Source of the DNA: Perkinsela sp. CCAP 1560/9
Taxonomy: Eukaryota; Protista; Euglenozoa: Kinetoplastea
Direction: 5' to 3'
Length of the DNA stretch: 64,000 nt
NCBI GenBank assembly: GCA_965644495.1
Contig: CBFFSA010000006.1
Span: forward strand, 62,001-126,000
Position 1 is the first letter of the stretch, and every line of letters begins with the position of its first letter. A model generated the notes under the pieces. The model saw only the letters and a program-made list of their open reading frames with translations, was not told where the DNA came from and ran no database searches. The position numbers and the translations under genes are program-made. Shown piece after piece: positions 40,920 through 48,973 of the stretch.

Positions 40920-41304
40920 CCCGAATAATACAGGCAGGCGAAAATTGTTGTGCTACGTGATAGCGGGGAAATTTTCCCTGTCCTAAAATGATGAAAGGGG
41001 TTTCATCAATGCTCAAGAATTCAACATCATCAGAATGATTCTTTGTCTGATAAACTGTTAGCACCTTTTCGCACAAATGGTCAAGCTTGTGCGGCGGAAC
41101 CATAGTCGACTTGCAACGCAATGACTTCCATTCATCAGTTATTGAAGCAAGAGGTGCAGCTGAAGCAGGAGGTACCTTTGATTTAGCACTGCTTAAAGCC
41201 GATCGGATGTTGGCATGAACAACGATAAGGGGAACAGCTGTTTTCACGACTACTGGCTTGGAATCGTCAGAGGCAAGTGCTCTGATCGCTCGATCATCTT
41301 CCTT
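40920..41304 (-). pseudogene. Fragment of a Ulp1-associated ORF, interrupted by the YR element and continuing at 48231-48390
   Basis: DEWK...VPPHKLDHLCEKV...LGQGKFP aligns with 30072-30542; after a frameshift LSRSTTIFACLYY is identical to the 37142 copy. Confidence 0.7.
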
Positions 41305-41721
41305 CCTGTTGGAGGTTCGGGGTCTCCTTTAACCCTGCTAAACCGGTCCAAAGCCCGGGGCTATGTAAAAAAAATACATAGAAAGGTGATGGAAGGATTT
41401 GCAACCTTATGAAAAGTGTAAAATTGAAAATTGTTGTAGTTGTTTTGCTCTGTATCACTTTATTTATACATGCATGATAATTCAAGGTCGTGCAGCGCGG
41501 ACATTGTAGCCGTAAACAAAAATATACTTTATGTTGTACTTTAAATGTGCTTTATATTGTGTGTGGATGATATACAGTTACGTGTAGTATACTGTATATT
41601 ATAGTGTATTTACATGCATATGAAGATACATACATACATACGTGTATATACACGTATGCACACATGTGAGTTAAAGAAAAAGGAGGAGGGGGGGACGCGT
41701 CCGACCCAAGGACTTTGTCCC

Positions 41722-41914
41722 TAGCAGGGTTAAAGGAGACCCCGAACCTCCAACAGGAAGTACCGCGTATGGAGCCGATTGTGCGCCCGCACTTCGAGCG
41801 AGATGCGCACACTTCCTGCTGAGGGCAGGGGTCGGACACCACAACCGTAAGATGCAGCGCGGTTGCTACGTTACTAGGTAAACATACAGTTTTTAGAAAC
41901 ATAGAGTTTTTGTT
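41722..41914 (-). repeat. Internal complementary region: antisense copy of the right-end/left-end circle junction
   Basis: Minus strand reads ...CATACGCGGTA-CTT-CCTGTTGGAGG..., which is the right terminus fused to the left terminus. Confidence 0.9.
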
Positions 41915-42029
41915 TTCTACAACTCAGTTCAAATAAGAAATTGAATTATGATAAATTGAATTAATTGAATAATTTGCAGTTTAATGAATAAACTAGATTC
42001 CAGCAGGGTATGAAGCTTGATGTAGAGTT

Positions 42030-42420
42030 AGTTCTTGTCTCATATGGCTTTAAATCCTGCAACGCAGGTGACCTTAGATTTCATAGTTAGATCTTAAGAC
42101 ATCTTGTCTCACGTAGCACTTTTAAATCCTGCAAAACAGGTACTTTAGATTCAAAGTTAGATCTTTGGGACATCGTGTCTTGCATAGACTTTTAAAACCC
42201 TGCAAGGCAGGTAATGTACATTTAGATTCATAGTTTATCTTGAGACGTCTTGTCTCACACAGAAGAAGTTCTTAATTCCTCCAAGGCAAGCTCATTAGAT
42301 TCATAACTAGATCTTTGAGACGTCTTGTCTCGCATAGCCTAAAAATCCTGCGACTCTCATAGAAAGCCTGCAATGCAAGCACAGATTCAGAGTTAGATCT
42401 TTTGCGAGGTTCTCATAGTT
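42030..42420. repeat. Degenerate tandem array of about 70-bp units (5-6 copies)
   Basis: TTTAAATCCTGCAA.GCAGG...TTAGATTCATAGTTAGATCTT.GAGAC.TCTTGTCTC recurs. Confidence 0.8.
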
Positions 42421-42462
42421 CAGTTTTCTTAAAATTTACATTTATTAGTCGCACTACTTGAT

Positions 42463-44865: not shown

Positions 44866-45732
44866 ATGGTACGACAAAGAACACAGCACGTACAAGACTC
44901 AGAAATTCGAGAAGGATACGAAAGATACCTTTCTCTCGACGTGCACCGCCACCTTGCTCAGCTTTCAGTTACGAGACAAACTGCTGCGAGACGAGAATGT
45001 TACTTCGCAAGGCTGGAAAGCCTCTTGCAGGTCCACGGCGGGTTTAATATACTTGAGAAACAATTTTTAGCCTTGTGCGCAAGTCTAGCGCGTTTCTATC
45101 GTGCCTCAACATTAGAATCATTTCGTGCCGCCCTCGTGTGGCGCCAGGTAGATATGCCCATAGAGGCATGCTGGACGCAATCTATTCGGTTCCGTAGACG
45201 ATTTAGAGGCGCACTGAAGCTTTGTTTGGATCCCGTGCCCCGGGGATCTGTAACGTTCAGTCAGTTGCGAACATTAACAAGTCGCTGCTCTGAGCGAGGG
45301 GAAATAGACTATGCCAGAGGTTTTATCGTCGCCTTTTACGGTTTGCTGCGACATAGCGAAATCACTTCCTTAAGACGAAGCGATATAGAGGTTAGTCACA
45401 CTGAGGCTTTGTTGCGCATCCGCGGGGGTAAAGGGCGGAGAAACAATGTCGTAGATATAGTTGTCCCAGAAGCTCACGATCTATTGGTCTACTTAAAGAC
45501 GTCGAGCAGCCACGAGTTACTCTTTCCTGGGTGGCAGAAGAAAAAGGCCAACATATTAATCAGCAATGAAGCGAAAAACCTACAATGGAATGTTCACCAG
45601 ACTTGGTCTTTCCACTCACTGCGCCATGGAGGTGCCGGACACCTTACTAGACAAGGAGTAGATCTTTAAACTCGTCTCCGACGAGGACGCTGGATGTCTG
45701 AGCAATCAGTATCTAATTATTCTATGGTGTAG
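44866..45732 (+). pseudogene. Tyrosine recombinase (one premature TAA before the catalytic Tyr)
   Basis: GLLRHSE, GGKG, FHSLRHGGA; after TAA at 45667-9 the frame continues RRGRWMSEQSVSNY to TAG at 45730-2. Confidence 0.88.
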
Positions 45733-45939
45733 CATAAGTATAGCACTCTAGTGCAGTGTACATACAGTATAGTTCCAAAATTCACTTATCTCCACAATAG
45801 ACTATAGCGTAATATTTGCACTGCGGGCAAACCGACACTACGCGTCGGATTCTTCACTCGCTGTCAGTATTTCAAGAACGAAACCTTATCATTTCGAGCT
45901 TGTACTTTTGTATTACCTCTTATTTCGCTCGCTCTACTC

Positions 45940-47684
45940 ATGCAAATGGATTCTCTTCTAGTCTCTGACAAGTCAGACCGTCCTGTCGAACCGGAATACT
46001 TTCTCCCTCCCTGCGATATCAGGCGGGGCCGTGGAGCGTACGCCACGGATAATGATGTTTTATGTCCGCTTGTGAACGTGGCCGGAATGAAACTTTGTTC
46101 TTCACTTTTTGAACATGCTCCTTTCGCGAAACGAGCGTTGGAACTTCTAAGCAAAGACCCATTTATGTCTAATTATGAAGTAAGAAAATTAAAAGAGACA
46201 CCAAACTCAGAGCGCTTCAGGTCGCATATACAAACGTTAGAGAAAGCAAAAGTTCTAGTGCCCGCCTCGTGGGAAGTGCCCCACGCTATAGGAAATTATA
46301 TGGCCGTACTCAAGGACCAAACTTACGTTAGGGCCATATTCGACTTGCGATGGACGAACGGATCACCGTTGACGATTTAGCATTTCATACCTTTGGCACC
46401 AGCGAACTGGTGAGAGCTCTCATTCAATTAGGTAATACTGCCCAATCAAAAATTAGATTTCTCCACGGGGACATAAAGAATATGTATTATCAAATACCCA
46501 TCTCAGCGGCCCTTAGTTATGCATGCTGTATTAGGCAAGGTAAAAGATTATTACGCCCTACAGTACTTCCTATGGGCTACAAACATGCCTGTAGCATTGC
46601 CCAGAGTCTCATGTGGGCTGTTTTGTCTTACTACGAATCGAGCGATGTAGTCTTGACCGGGGTGCAAGAAATGAATAGTATGAATGAAATGCAGGGCATC
46701 GTTTACCTTCCCGACGGAGGCTTTATCGCCTTACTTTACGACTCATTTCTTTTTGCCATAACTGAACTTATGCTTAAACATTGGGAGGCTCGTTTATCTA
46801 GAAACTTTCAAGTCTTTAACTTAGTTCCAAAATACATACGGCGGGAATGTTGCACATGCGAGTTTACATTTTGTGGCATAGAAATAGCACAAAAAGAAGG
46901 AAAAACTTATTGGAAAGTGGACCCCTCAACTCAAAGAACATGGTCTTCAATGTCCCAACTACTACATTCGAACACTCCTCGCATTCTATTTCAGTTTGCG
47001 GGCTACCTTCGACATGCACATACAATATTAGGTATCGCTCCTCGGGAGCTCGGGCGCATCTCAAAGCTACAAAGTGATCAGGGAAAAATAGAGAATTGGG
47101 ATGCAAGAATACTCCCCGAATCTGTATCTGCTCTTGTTGTTCGCATGGTGCAACACGTTGCTCATGTCAACGAAAAAGCACGAGACTGGCAAATGTTTTC
47201 CAATCCCACATTAAATAAAAGAGTTTACTTTGCAGCAGTAGATGCCACACCCACGCGATGGGCTGTTTGGCCAATGAAAAAAGGCGAAGTTTCACGAGAT
47301 GAAATTATATATCAAGCTTGTAAACTCGAAATTGTGTTAGCGGAAGCCACAGCCATAGCTAATGCTATTCGAAGCGCCCACAGCAAAGGTTTCCAATTTA
47401 TTGTAATTGCCAATGATAATACGGCCGCATGTCACTCGTTTGTTAAGGGATACTCCCCACTAGATGCGCTTGATCATATAATAAAAGGTTGTCAGAATTT
47501 CAAAGGGAAGTTGATTCTATGTGATATTCCTAGCGAGGAAAACATCGCGGATGTTGGAACTCGACCAGAGAAGATATACTCTGAATCAGAATACACCTTT
47601 AGGAGCTATCAGTCTTGGAATCGACTATGCCATGCGTGGGATAATTATAGGATTTTGGGCACGACATTCACCAGTCGAAAATAA
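45940..47684 (+). pseudogene. DIRS-type reverse transcriptase plus RNase H (one frameshift near 46370)
   Basis: AVLK...RAIFDLR, GDIKNMYYQIPI, LPMG, FCG; RNase H AVDAT, LAEATA, NDNTAA, IPSEENIADVGTR. Confidence 0.88.
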
Positions 47685-48046
47685 GGATATAAATATTGAA
47701 TCCAGTCGGAACTCCTCACAGATTCCGTTCTATCATACTCATGACATTCTGTTACGTTCGACCTTAATCTTTGACTTATGCAAGGCTTCATACTATTTAA
47801 ACATATTTCGATTATCCCAACTTCAATTATTTACATACTTTTACACATTACTATGAAAATGCGGCGCTCGTGCTTGATCAGGAACCCTCCCAGTGGGATT
47901 GACACATGGTAGGCTAACTACGGAGTGTTCTCTGTCATTGGTGAAGGACCTAGGAGAGCCTTGCGTCCCCGTACCCGGAACAATTTCGGGAGCCGGAGTG
48001 GTACTTGCGGCGTTTGCATGTGGGGATTGCAGGCGCTCTTGTTACA

Positions 48047-48076
48047 AACAACAACAACAACAACAACAACAACAAC
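48047..48076. repeat. (AAC)10 microsatellite abutting the terminal segment of the YR element
   Basis: Directly visible. Confidence 0.95.
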
Positions 48077-48973
48077 AAAAACTCTATGTTTCTAAAAACT
48101 GTATGTTTACCTAGTAACGTAGCAACCGCGCTGCATCTTACGGTTGTGGTGTCCGACCCCTGCCCTCAGCAGGAAGTGTGCGCATCTCGCTCGAAGTGCG
48201 GGCGCACAATCGGCTCCATACGCGGTACTTTTTTATTTTTTTGACTGCCTTCCTTTGAGAATAAGTTTGTTACTGGGCCTTGAAATTCCACGAGTACGTT
48301 GTCAAAGGTTTAAAAATGTATTCTGTTGCCTTCGCAAGGATTCCTTTCCTACAGTGTATGCTTCCCCCAGGTTTCCTTGTGTGCTTGGTCAATCAGTTGC
48401 ATAGTAACTTTTCTGACTTTTGGACATCAAGGCGCCCACGTGTCAAACGGAAATCATCGAAAGGACACAAAATCATCGAAGGTGTTTTAATTTGTTTTGG
48501 GGGAGATTCTGCCATATCTTCGGACTGGGCAGTGGTCACAAGCTGCAAATATGAATTTTAGATAAAAAAATAGGAAAGACAGTAGAAACGTGAAAGAAAA
48601 AAATTTCCGAGGATACGAATTTTCACTGCGCTATGATTAATATACAGTACAGAAAGAATAATATAAAACTGATTTGATTAAGCGCGCGTGAGAGGATTAC
48701 CTGGAGAGTATATCGCCTAGGATTTGCATGACACTAAGAAAACCACAGAAAACTCAGATACGAGGATAGATAAAAAAATATACACAAAAAACTGTTGCCG
48801 TGGACGGAAGCTCGGAAGGTGGGGCATTGTAAAAAATGCCCCTGACCTATGGCCACTTCTCAGTGACCATAAATAAATGGAATATGTACAGGAAAACATA
48901 TGCACAGAAACGAACAGACTTTCAAGATTATAAATTAGATTGACAAGACAAAAAACTTTTGCAAAATCTGAAA

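Follow-up and report, generated by a model that had tools for sequence, protein, structure and literature searches.

To our knowledge, the DIRS-order elements are the least understood of the retrotransposons, and we know of an experimentally shown role for their internal complementary region (ICR) only in Dictyostelium DIRS-1. DIRS1-like elements have ICRs at the 3' end together with inverted terminal repeats (ITRs), and the two ICRs overlap on a 3-bp circular junction that is complementary to the NTT termini (PMC3266345). In DIRS-1 the ICR is experimentally essential, and this element also acts in trans (PMC7192593). The VIPER, TATE, Ngaro and PAT elements carry split direct repeats (PMC6681497, PMC12278014). 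Ribozymes at the 5' end have been described for two non-LTR elements: in Schistosoma Perere-3 a twister variant would release the RNA of the element from a longer shared transcript (PMC8501958), and L1Tc has an HDV-like ribozyme, as cited in PMC12278014.

The locus reported here belongs to the window, the whole 64-kb stretch of DNA that was analysed, and is a tyrosine recombinase (YR) retroelement with plus-strand ORFs between its repeats (Table 1). The preliminary description had placed such an element at 41302-48230, and its coordinates hold, the Pfam-matched YR and the RT/RNase H ORFs both lying inside the repeats. The element combines a tyrosine recombinase with RT/RNase H and has neither integrase nor endonuclease, as is characteristic of the DIRS order. 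The R, K, HxxR and Y positions of the recombinase align in eight relatives, and the RT motifs and the RNase H D-E-D residues are found within the RT/RNase H gene, for which the RVT_1/RVT_3 and HIV-1 RT matches are weak. The window copy is defective and non-autonomous: the YR is interrupted by an in-frame TAA at 45667-45669, upstream of the segment with the catalytic Tyr (from the translation and an alignment to intact relatives), RT is frameshifted (intact RT/RNase H relatives are 552-675 aa long), gag is deleted apart from its last residues, and a MITE has been inserted.

Table 1. Features of the retroelement, in window coordinates
Feature	Position	Strand	Description
A, left terminus	41302..41340	+	begins with junction trinucleotide CTT (41302-41304); 39/39 complementary to 41722-41760
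Twister-like self-cleaving ribozyme candidate	41326..41396	+	type P1, with P5, without P3; Rfam RF03160 (clan CL00120), 28.8 bits, E 0.006
Loop between A and A'	41341..41721	+	rest of ribozyme and AT/GT-rich tract
Internal complementary region (A'B')	41722..41914	+	193 nt; exact reverse complement of joined ends B+A
Leader repeats	42049..43262	+	~71-75-nt units (42049-42351) and (GTTA)n (42463-43191 and beyond)
gag remnant	43317..43349	+	last 11 residues; identified by tblastn with the gag of L001
Nested non-autonomous Tc1/mariner-type insertion (MITE)	43933..44808		inverted ends 43933-44043 / 44697-44808
Tyrosine recombinase gene	44866..45729	+	Pfam PF00589 (Phage_integrase), E 9e-11, on 44866-45669
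RT/RNase H gene	45940..47684	+	two frames; frameshift near 46350-46380
Conserved 3' untranslated block	47858..48046	+	84-98% identical in L001-L004, against ~48% protein identity
(AAC)12 microsatellite	48047..48082	+	between 3' block and B
B, right terminus	48074..48230	+	ends in CTT (48228-48230); 157/157 complementary to 41758-41914

A repeat search returned two inverted pairs, each 100% complementary: 41302-41340 with 41722-41760 (39 nt, 381 nt apart) and 41758-41914 with 48074-48230 (157 nt, 6159 nt apart). Their internal copies, A' and B', share three bases, AAG at 41758-41760, complementary to the CTT found at the start of A and at the end of B. This self-comparison agrees with the earlier claim that the internal block is, base for base, the reverse complement of the fused ends B and A. 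Probes made from A and B match nowhere else in the 64-kb window, and dinucleotide-shuffled sequences gave no match to either of them. The two ends are essentially unrelated to each other, as had been proposed, except that the opening bases of A weakly resemble, over 22 nt, a stretch inside B'; this motif of ~22 nt is present at the start of A and again within B' and B.

The earlier statement that both ITRs and split direct repeats are absent stands for direct repeats of A or B, none of which occurs in the 64-kb window or in L006, a relative described below, and has to be softened for ITRs, where a weak ITR-like motif of 15-23 nt exists. Compared with the reverse complement of B, the left end of the window element matches best over 22 nt at 78%, a value reached by 24 of 300 shuffles; in L006 the best match is 15 nt, reached by 7 of 300. 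Apart from this weak ITR-like motif, the element lacks real inverted terminal repeats, and it has no split direct repeats. The absence of split direct repeats separates the element from the Ngaro/PAT-like group, which has split direct repeats, and from VIPER and TATE, where A1 lies 5' and B1-A2-B2 lies 3' (PMC6681497, PMC12278014), a comparison of architecture and not of sequence. The order of gag (CCHC), YR and RT/RNase H in the window's genome is shared with VIPER and TATE, as is the lack of a methyltransferase, and the same-strand blocks of intron-less ORFs in the host genome are a further point in common with these kinetoplastid elements. Within the literature covered, ICRs are described only at the 3' end with ITRs, and the other groups have split direct repeats (PMC3266345, PMC6681497, PMC12278014), so that the terminal architecture still counts as undescribed.

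The layout recurs in elements of other environmental assemblies (L006, L016 and L008), which are ~33-35% identical to the window element in RT/RNase H. In L006, from a short-read assembly of a different sample, the whole layout is present in a sequence unrelated to that of the window, with A/A' of 57 nt, B'/B of 106 nt at 100% and a 3-nt overlap TTT; the arrangement was found again in L007, an independent Logan assembly whose ends are the B'/B repeat. The B'...B pair is seen in L016 and the A...A' pair in L008, and A...A'(B') occurs in L001 and L003, two related families from the assembly that contains the window. Homologues of the A repeat lie at 5628-5665 in L001, 6127-6162 in L003 and 894-950 in L006, and the loop between A and A' measures 269 nt in L001, 118 nt in L003 and 325 nt in L006. 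The splint, as we call the internal block, starts 420 nt from the left end of the window element and 5' of every ORF, and it is placed likewise in L001, L003, L006 and L016. The expectation that copies start at A, carry A'B' and end at B is borne out completely by L006 and only in part by the others, L001-L004 being without B. Two further elements from one assembly, L011 (degenerate) and L015 (cut at the contig start), are uninformative on termini, and the contigs of L012, L013 and L014 are too short for 5' or 3' repeats.

These copies bear on the suspicion that the arrangement is a local accident, that is, an inverted 3' split direct repeat, two nested opposite copies or an assembly error. 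The suspicion draws on the window's own genome, where the present copy is the single complete one and the only one in which B is found, and where L001-L004 stop at an (AAC)n/(AAAC)n tract followed by unrelated DNA. We regard it as extremely improbable, given that the order of A, A'B', ORFs and B recurs in L006 and L007, with partial recurrence in L016, L008, L001 and L003, and that split direct repeats are absent from every copy. Two long repeats were considered as split direct repeats and rejected: that of L004 (7198-7581 = 12265-12648) recurs in another context, in L002, and is a dispersed repeat, and that of L003 (4711-5105 = 12223-12616) matches nothing else, lies without A or B and is read as a local duplication.

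With DIRS1-like elements the locus shares YR and RT/RNase H, an internal region complementary to both ends whose halves overlap on the 3-bp circle junction, NTT termini, the lack of a target-site duplication, and ends that continue past any ITR, named lE and rE in the DIRS1-like group (PMC3266345, PMC7192593). The overlap reads AAG against CTT at both ends of the window element and AAA against TTT in L006; the termini CTT and TTT, held in a single copy at the ICR overlap, match the NTT and 3-bp circular junction rule of the DIRS1-like elements (PMC3266345). The differences lie in the position of the ICR, which adjoins the right terminus in DIRS1-like elements and is found here in the 5' leader, in their conserved ITRs, and in a methyltransferase domain that follows RT/RNase H there and has no counterpart here: among 23 relatives of 414-675 aa Pfam gave no domain beyond RT/RNase H. 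Further differences are the ribozyme motif in the left terminus, the YDS that forms RT motif C, and the gene order. In L001 and L003 a 378-aa gag bearing a CCHC knuckle precedes YR and then RT/RNase H, whereas YR comes first in L006, L008 and L016, so that both gag-YR-RT/RH and YR-gag-RT/RH are found across the clade. As judged from the sequences, the splint is the known DIRS1-type ICR logic, with its 3-bp circle junction and NTT termini, in a new place and not a new principle.

The repeats B' and B could also be viewed as DNA-level sites of the recombinase, used for inversion of the 6.2-kb coding segment or for Crypton-type excision, with RT having a secondary role. YR enzymes do act on inverted sites, and the recurrence of the motif from the start of A in both B' and B would suit such sites; nevertheless, the orientation of the coding segment relative to A and the ribozyme is identical in all copies, the clade as a whole retains an RT/RNase H gene, and a block in which the ends are joined through a single common trinucleotide is the hallmark of a circle junction, all of which makes this view highly unlikely.

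The left repeat straddles a twister-like candidate whose predicted cleavage site, U41330/A41331, lies 29 nt in from the left end. Its RF03160 score of 28.8 bits, like those of L001 (25.7) and L003 (22.7), is below the gathering score of 67.2, in a model that leaves pseudoknots unscored. The twister core (P1, P2, P4, T1, T2, the conserved UAA cleavage loop and the L4 loop) is present in the window element, L001 and L003, apart from one C-U mismatch in P2: in the window candidate P1, P4, T1 and T2 pair fully, and P2 has three of four pairs, the mismatch being at its first pair. Compensatory changes are seen in pseudoknot T1 (CCA/UGG against the consensus CCC/GGG) and, between families, in P5. 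The motif of L006 keeps P2, P4, T2 and P5 with T1 unpaired, and Rfam gave no match on this region. Overall, four elements have a twister-like motif that overlaps A, and in L008 the ribozyme slot is occupied by a candidate HDV-like motif (RF02682, 26.9 bits, below the gathering score of 44), with P1 of 7 bp, P2 of 7-8 bp, P3 of 3 bp, P4 of 6-7 bp and the J4/2 sequence GGCGAAU, P1.1 being not evident. A scan of JGI metagenomes with a twister-core pattern found only two canonical twisters (L009 and L010), both unrelated, and no relatives of the element; these two help to confirm the predicted twister-like nature of the motif. No match was obtained in a scan of viral contigs (pattern P0166).

The preliminary description had both cDNA ends simply ligated on the splint; a ribozyme motif in the left repeat predicts that the 3' end is instead filled in. 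The element would be transcribed, possibly by upstream read-through, and its RNA would be cleaved by the twister, retaining only the last 10 nt of A. RT would synthesise a minus-strand cDNA in which the internal block reads B-A. The 3' end of this cDNA, the complement of the retained A, would fold back by ~400 nt onto the internal A and be extended to the junction, and the stretch upstream of the cut, removed from the RNA by the ribozyme, would in this way be restored. The 5' end, carrying the B' sequence, would anneal adjacent to it on the internal B, and closure of the nick would give a single-stranded circle. After second-strand synthesis YR would recombine the junction CTT with a genomic CTT, leaving the inserted element with CTT at both flanks and no target-site duplication. 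Fold-back priming needs a repeat on both sides of the predicted cut, exactly as seen: A spans the cut in every case, with 29, 37 and 79 nt upstream and 10, 20 and 57 nt downstream. A route in which the 3' end of the RNA itself primes on B' was rejected, since the loop and the ribozyme would end up inverted by the extension. Although the genes are broken, the A/A' and B/B' repeats agree at all positions (196/196), which fits a recent insertion, mobilised in trans, whose ends were regenerated from the splint; with gag absent and both YR and RT broken, the window copy must have moved with proteins supplied in trans. We consider it probable that the 5' leader of the family carries an antisense copy of the circle junction, some hundreds of bases 3' of a candidate self-cleaving ribozyme within the left repeat, and that the present copy was mobilised in trans.

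The same inverted repeats might act in RNA, where a panhandle formed by the 157-bp B':B duplex and by A:A' would serve packaging, translation control or RT priming, the ends being joined otherwise. The plus-strand RNA has identical complementarity, B' overlaps the start of the first ORF in L006 and L016, so that pairing could regulate translation, and the window element, L001 and L003 all keep a stem in which the sequence just upstream of A' pairs with the interior of B'. Still, a panhandle has no need for its complements to abut, nor for them to share a trinucleotide which is found at the insertion flanks as well, a perfect duplex of 157 bp exceeds what it requires, and the part of A upstream of the predicted cut, in sequence that the RNA would lose, is left unexplained; we consider this role unlikely. 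Pairing of A with A' in the RNA would, moreover, compete with the candidate ribozyme fold.

Compared with Perere-3 and L1Tc, the element shares a 5' ribozyme, here a candidate, that would free its RNA from a co-transcript; these two are non-LTR elements that use target-primed reverse transcription, and Perere-3 regains its lost P1 strand from the target-site duplication, whereas the bases lost here would come from the internal antisense copy. Tentatively, the clade may be a separate superfamily of YR retroelements, in which a twister or HDV-like ribozyme sets the 5' end of the RNA inside the element and the 5' junction copy restores the terminus and joins the ends. If so, there would be a concrete reason for the internal complementary region, with the ribozyme position predicting exactly which bases the splint must restore, and a promoter-less element could ride on host read-through transcription. 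The family offers a second, independently arranged version of the device, at the 5' end, without ITRs and with either gene order, which suggests that the circle-junction copy is essential and ITRs are dispensable. Our literature search found no paper tying ribozymes to DIRS-order elements, and two ribozyme classes within the left repeat would be the first link found between self-cleaving ribozymes and recombinase retroelements. The analysis also exposes a divergent RT/RNase H clade with YDS in motif C, known only from environmental assemblies in the databases searched; homology and cluster look-ups found no named relative of the element proteins.

Outside the repeats, L001 carries (GTTA)n, at 6253-6800, in a place equivalent to that in the leader of the window element. 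Rfam gave no match at gathering level on the conserved 3' block or across the whole window, and this block folds no more stably than shuffled sequences (z-score -1.1), one of its hairpins having compensatory changes. The ends of the nested MITE match a transposon at 25358-26921 of the window. The host contig is not human: its ORFs are densely packed and intron-less, and it carries transposases of the Tc1/mariner and Merlin-like types together with YR retroelements. The intron-less ORFs of the host genome are arranged in same-strand blocks.

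The left terminus A and the right terminus B of the element each form a perfect inverted pair with an internal antisense copy, A'B'; a repeat search of positions 40500-49000 recovered both pairs. The internal arms overlap by three bases (AAG, 41758-41760). Read on the opposite strand, the 193-nt block 41722-41914 gives B followed by A, linked via a single CTT that forms the opening three bases of A and the closing three of B. The coordinates and layout in the preliminary description, read from the sequence alone, are exact. Probes for A and the B end had no further match in the 64-kb window, and none in any shuffle. 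Neither the window flanks (ATCTTC/CTT ... CTT/TTTTAT) nor those of the environmental relative L006 carry a duplication beyond the trinucleotide. A and B do not form inverted versions of one another. The accompanying claim that inverted terminal repeats (ITRs) are lacking is nearly right but not strictly so, since the best local match of the left end to the reverse complement of B begins, in the window as in L006, at A's first base. Each match is marginal against shuffles, and may represent a vestigial ITR or a recombinase-binding motif. A conserved stem was also observed, in which the sequence just 5' of A' pairs with the inside of B' and encloses the copy of the circle junction.

Relatives of the reverse transcriptase/RNase H (RT/RH) ORF were few: 10 proteins in a word-indexed search and 260 proteins at E <= 0.001 in an exhaustive search of representatives, all of them unnamed and from ENA, JGI or Logan assemblies. 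Five (L001-L005) share their ENA assembly, ERZ24900291, with the window. In L001 (78% amino acid identity to the window), A and A'B' are about 87-97% identical to those of the window; B is not found, the 3' block being followed by an (AAAC)n tract and then a palindromic repeat, and the left junction falls at a CTT within the loop of the palindromic repeat. In L003 (48% identity), A and A' differ in sequence with their complementarity kept, and a B'-like stretch comes next; no B occurs before the contig end, and the sequence after (AAC)n is unrelated and repeats 4711-5105. This direct repeat, with one copy running from the end of the (AAC)n to the contig end and the other 1 kb upstream of A, probably reflects a local tandem duplication of 7.5 kb. 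The complete layout, in unrelated sequence and with flanking DNA at both sides, is present in L006 from a different sample (ERZ27280294, about 33% identity), where the arms, as in the window, overlap by three bases and TTT stands at both ends. L007 is an independent Logan assembly of the L006 element, whose ends are the B'/B repeat. As the arrangement recurs, whole or in part, in L001, L003, L006, L007, L008 and L016, the splint architecture is, judged from these sequences, a property of the clade and no locus-specific accident.

The left repeat also harbors candidate ribozymes, a feature absent from the preliminary description, whose interpretation of the tyrosine recombinase (YR) retroelement is supported and gains strength from this finding. 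An Rfam scan by E-value gave a type-P1 twister match in the window, and the homologous places in L003 and L001 also match twister. The twister helices were checked by hand. P1 (4-5 bp), P4, T1 and T2 are fully paired in the window, L001 and L003, and P2 is paired at three of four positions, with a C-U adjoining the cleavage loop. T1 reads CCA/UGG versus the consensus CCC/GGG, a compensatory change beyond the scoring of the covariance model; two bona fide metagenomic twisters found with the core pattern (L009 and L010) vary at the same position. At the P5 position a further hairpin, of 7 bp in the window and 9 bp in L003, shows full compensation among the window, L003 and L006. L006 retains the twister core (P2, P4, T2 and P5, with an alternative P1), whereas T1 is unpaired there and Rfam gives no twister match. 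The Oryza sativa twister is cleaved at the U-A step after P1, and by analogy the window RNA would be cut between U41330 and A41331. The same slot in L008 holds an HDV-like motif with P1 of 7 bp, P2 of 7-8 bp (outside the model's score), P3 of 3 bp, P4 of 6-7 bp and GGCGAAU in J4/2; P1.1 was not evident. Repeat A spans the predicted cut in the window, L006 and L008.

DIRS1-like elements have two internal complementary regions (ICRs) whose overlap is a 3-bp circular junction; their termini read NTT, and YR-mediated integration at an identical trinucleotide leaves no duplication (PMC3266345); DIRS-1 retrotransposition needs the ICR at a step after first-strand synthesis (PMC7192593). The window layout, to judge from its repeats, carries the same logic, and the following end-joining cycle is plausible as a whole. 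Because ribozyme cleavage would fall inside the element, the RNA would be incomplete at its 5' end, with no more of A retained than its final 10 nt. Minus-strand cDNA would carry the internal block as B-A. The cDNA 3' end could fold onto the internal A and be elongated as far as the junction, which would restore the 29 missing bases, among them the 5' strand of P1. The cDNA 5' end would pair with the internal B, adjoining the extended 3' end; closure of the nick would give a circle, and the YR would exchange the junction CTT with a genomic CTT. This mechanism is directly testable.

The element shares the ICR with a 3-bp junction and the NTT termini with DIRS1-like elements, but these possess ITRs and also differ in ICR position, the methyltransferase domain and gene order. 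With VIPER and TATE it has in common the gene order seen in the window's genome, and perhaps the type of host, but it lacks their split direct repeats (PMC6681497, PMC12278014); such repeats are also present in Ngaro and PAT-like elements. Ribozymes at the 5' end are known in non-LTR elements, namely an HDV-like one in L1Tc and twister variants in Perere-3 (PMC8501958). Our literature search, with key subscription reviews and Repbase outside its scope, revealed no link between ribozymes and the DIRS order and no description of a 5' ICR. Among YR retroelements it represents a new variant, of which a prior account may exist.

Gene order in the window's genome is gag, YR, RT/RH. L006, L008, L014 and L016 instead begin with the YR, in which the positions R, K, HxxR and Y align, followed by a gag-like ORF that bears CCHC knuckles at its C-terminus. 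In L006 and L016 the splint's B' half overlaps the start codon of the YR, their first ORF. The RT diverges strongly, with weak Pfam matches to RVT_1 in 2 and RVT_3 in 3 of 23 members and HIV-1 RT as the best PDB match (E 1e-3). Motif C is Y-D-S, versus the usual YxDD; all 23 aligned proteins (window part 46350-47684) have one invariant Asp there, and the motif is conserved throughout the clade. No methyltransferase domain was found in the clade proteins.

The window copy is non-autonomous. Its YR is stopped by TAA at 45667, the frame continuing into the catalytic-tyrosine segment of intact relatives, and the 378-aa gag with a CCHC knuckle that lies upstream of YR in same-assembly relatives is reduced to a remnant. 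The gap contains repeats of 71-75-nt units plus a (GTTA)n array (both plus strand), the latter common to the window copy and L001. The repeat arms are nevertheless identical at 196/196 positions, consistent with the recent insertion, by mobilization in trans, of an RNA that was defective beforehand and whose ends were rebuilt from the internal copy; the proteins of DIRS-1 act in trans (PMC7192593).

Downstream of RT/RH follow a 189-nt block, (AAC)12 and B (plus strand). The block is 84-98% identical in L001-L004 and 98.5% in L003, with RT/RH proteins about 48% identical, and an (AAC)n or (AAAC)n tract always follows it. Compensatory changes occur in one of its hairpins; the stability of the fold is unremarkable, and Rfam gives no match. 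The block could represent a functional RNA, or a 3' module that is exchanged or moves independently. Of five copies in the window's genome, four continue after the microsatellite into unrelated DNA and not into B; they may have been truncated there or have arisen by another route.

The window is of eukaryotic, non-human origin, with dense intron-less ORFs in same-strand blocks. The element lies in a transposon-rich island (about 35.5-53 kb) between host genes, together with a sister-family RT/RH fragment, a further RT gene, Tc1/mariner and an IS1595/Merlin-like transposase. The RT/RH fragment is oriented opposite to the element, about 1.9 kb upstream of A. The palindromic repeat (about 110 nt, with 41-nt arms and a 29-nt loop) recurs in the window's assembly, and in L002 a 1.6-kb palindrome is built around it, directly 3' of the element's 3' block.

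Table. Features of the element, its relatives and its surroundings (positions within the window or the named locus)
Feature	Locus	Positions	Strand	Details
A / A'	window	41302-41340 / 41722-41760		39 nt, perfect; spacing 381 nt
B' / B	window	41758-41914 / 48074-48230		157 nt, perfect; spacing 6159 nt
A; A'B'	L001	5628-5665; 5935-6086		
A / A'	L003	6127-6162 / 6281-6316		
A / A'	L006	894-950 / 1276-1332		57 nt, 96%
B' / B	L006	1330-1435 / 6505-6610		106 nt, 100%
A / A'	L008 (environmental)	81-216 / 946-1080		136 nt
B' / B	L016 (JGI metagenome)	105-199 / 5474-5568		95 nt, 99%
Direct repeat	L003	4711-5105 / 12223-12616		395 nt, 99.7% identity
ITR-like match	window			22 nt, 54 nt inside B'; 24/300 shuffles
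ITR-like match	L006			15 nt, 37 nt inside B'; 7/300 shuffles
Stem around junction copy	window	41699-41708 / 41829-41838		
Stem around junction copy	L001	5909-5920 / 6040-6052		
Stem around junction copy	L003	6258-6287 / 6349-6378		
Twister match, type P1	window	41326-41396		28.8 bits, E 0.006; gathering score 67.2
HDV-like motif RF02682	L008	160-238		26.9 bits, E 0.44; gathering score 44
A relative to predicted cut	window			29 nt upstream, 10 nt downstream
A relative to predicted cut	L006			37 nt upstream, 20 nt downstream
A relative to predicted cut	L008			79 nt upstream, 57 nt downstream
gag remnant	window	43317-43349	+	last 11 residues
Nested MITE	window	43933-44808		non-autonomous derivative; inverted ends match Tc1/mariner transposon 25358-26921
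YR gene	window	44866-45669	+	Pfam Phage_integrase, E 9e-11
RT/RNase H	window	45940-47684	+	frameshift split near 46350-46380
YR, gag (CCHC), RT/RH	L006	1395-6491		
YR, gag (CCHC), RT/RH	L008	1179-5965		
YR, gag (CCHC), RT/RH	L016	126-5270		
3' block	window	47858-48046	+	
3' block	L001	11947-12125		
3' block	L002	11458-11653		
3' block	L003	12017-12210		
3' block	L004	11680-11874		
Palindromic repeat	L001	3454-3569, 5566-5632, 12185-12301		
Palindromic repeat	L002	11669-13292		
Palindromic repeat	L011	13763-13840		
Tc1/mariner transposon	window	25358-26921	-	DDE_3/HTH_Tnp_Tc3_2 ORF 25570-26691
RVT_1 reverse-transcriptase ORF, separate	window	27869-28957	-	further left of element
Sister-family RNase H fragment	window	39052-39363	-	60% aa identity to L003
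IS1595/Merlin-like DDE transposase ORF	window	48974-49546	-	just right of element
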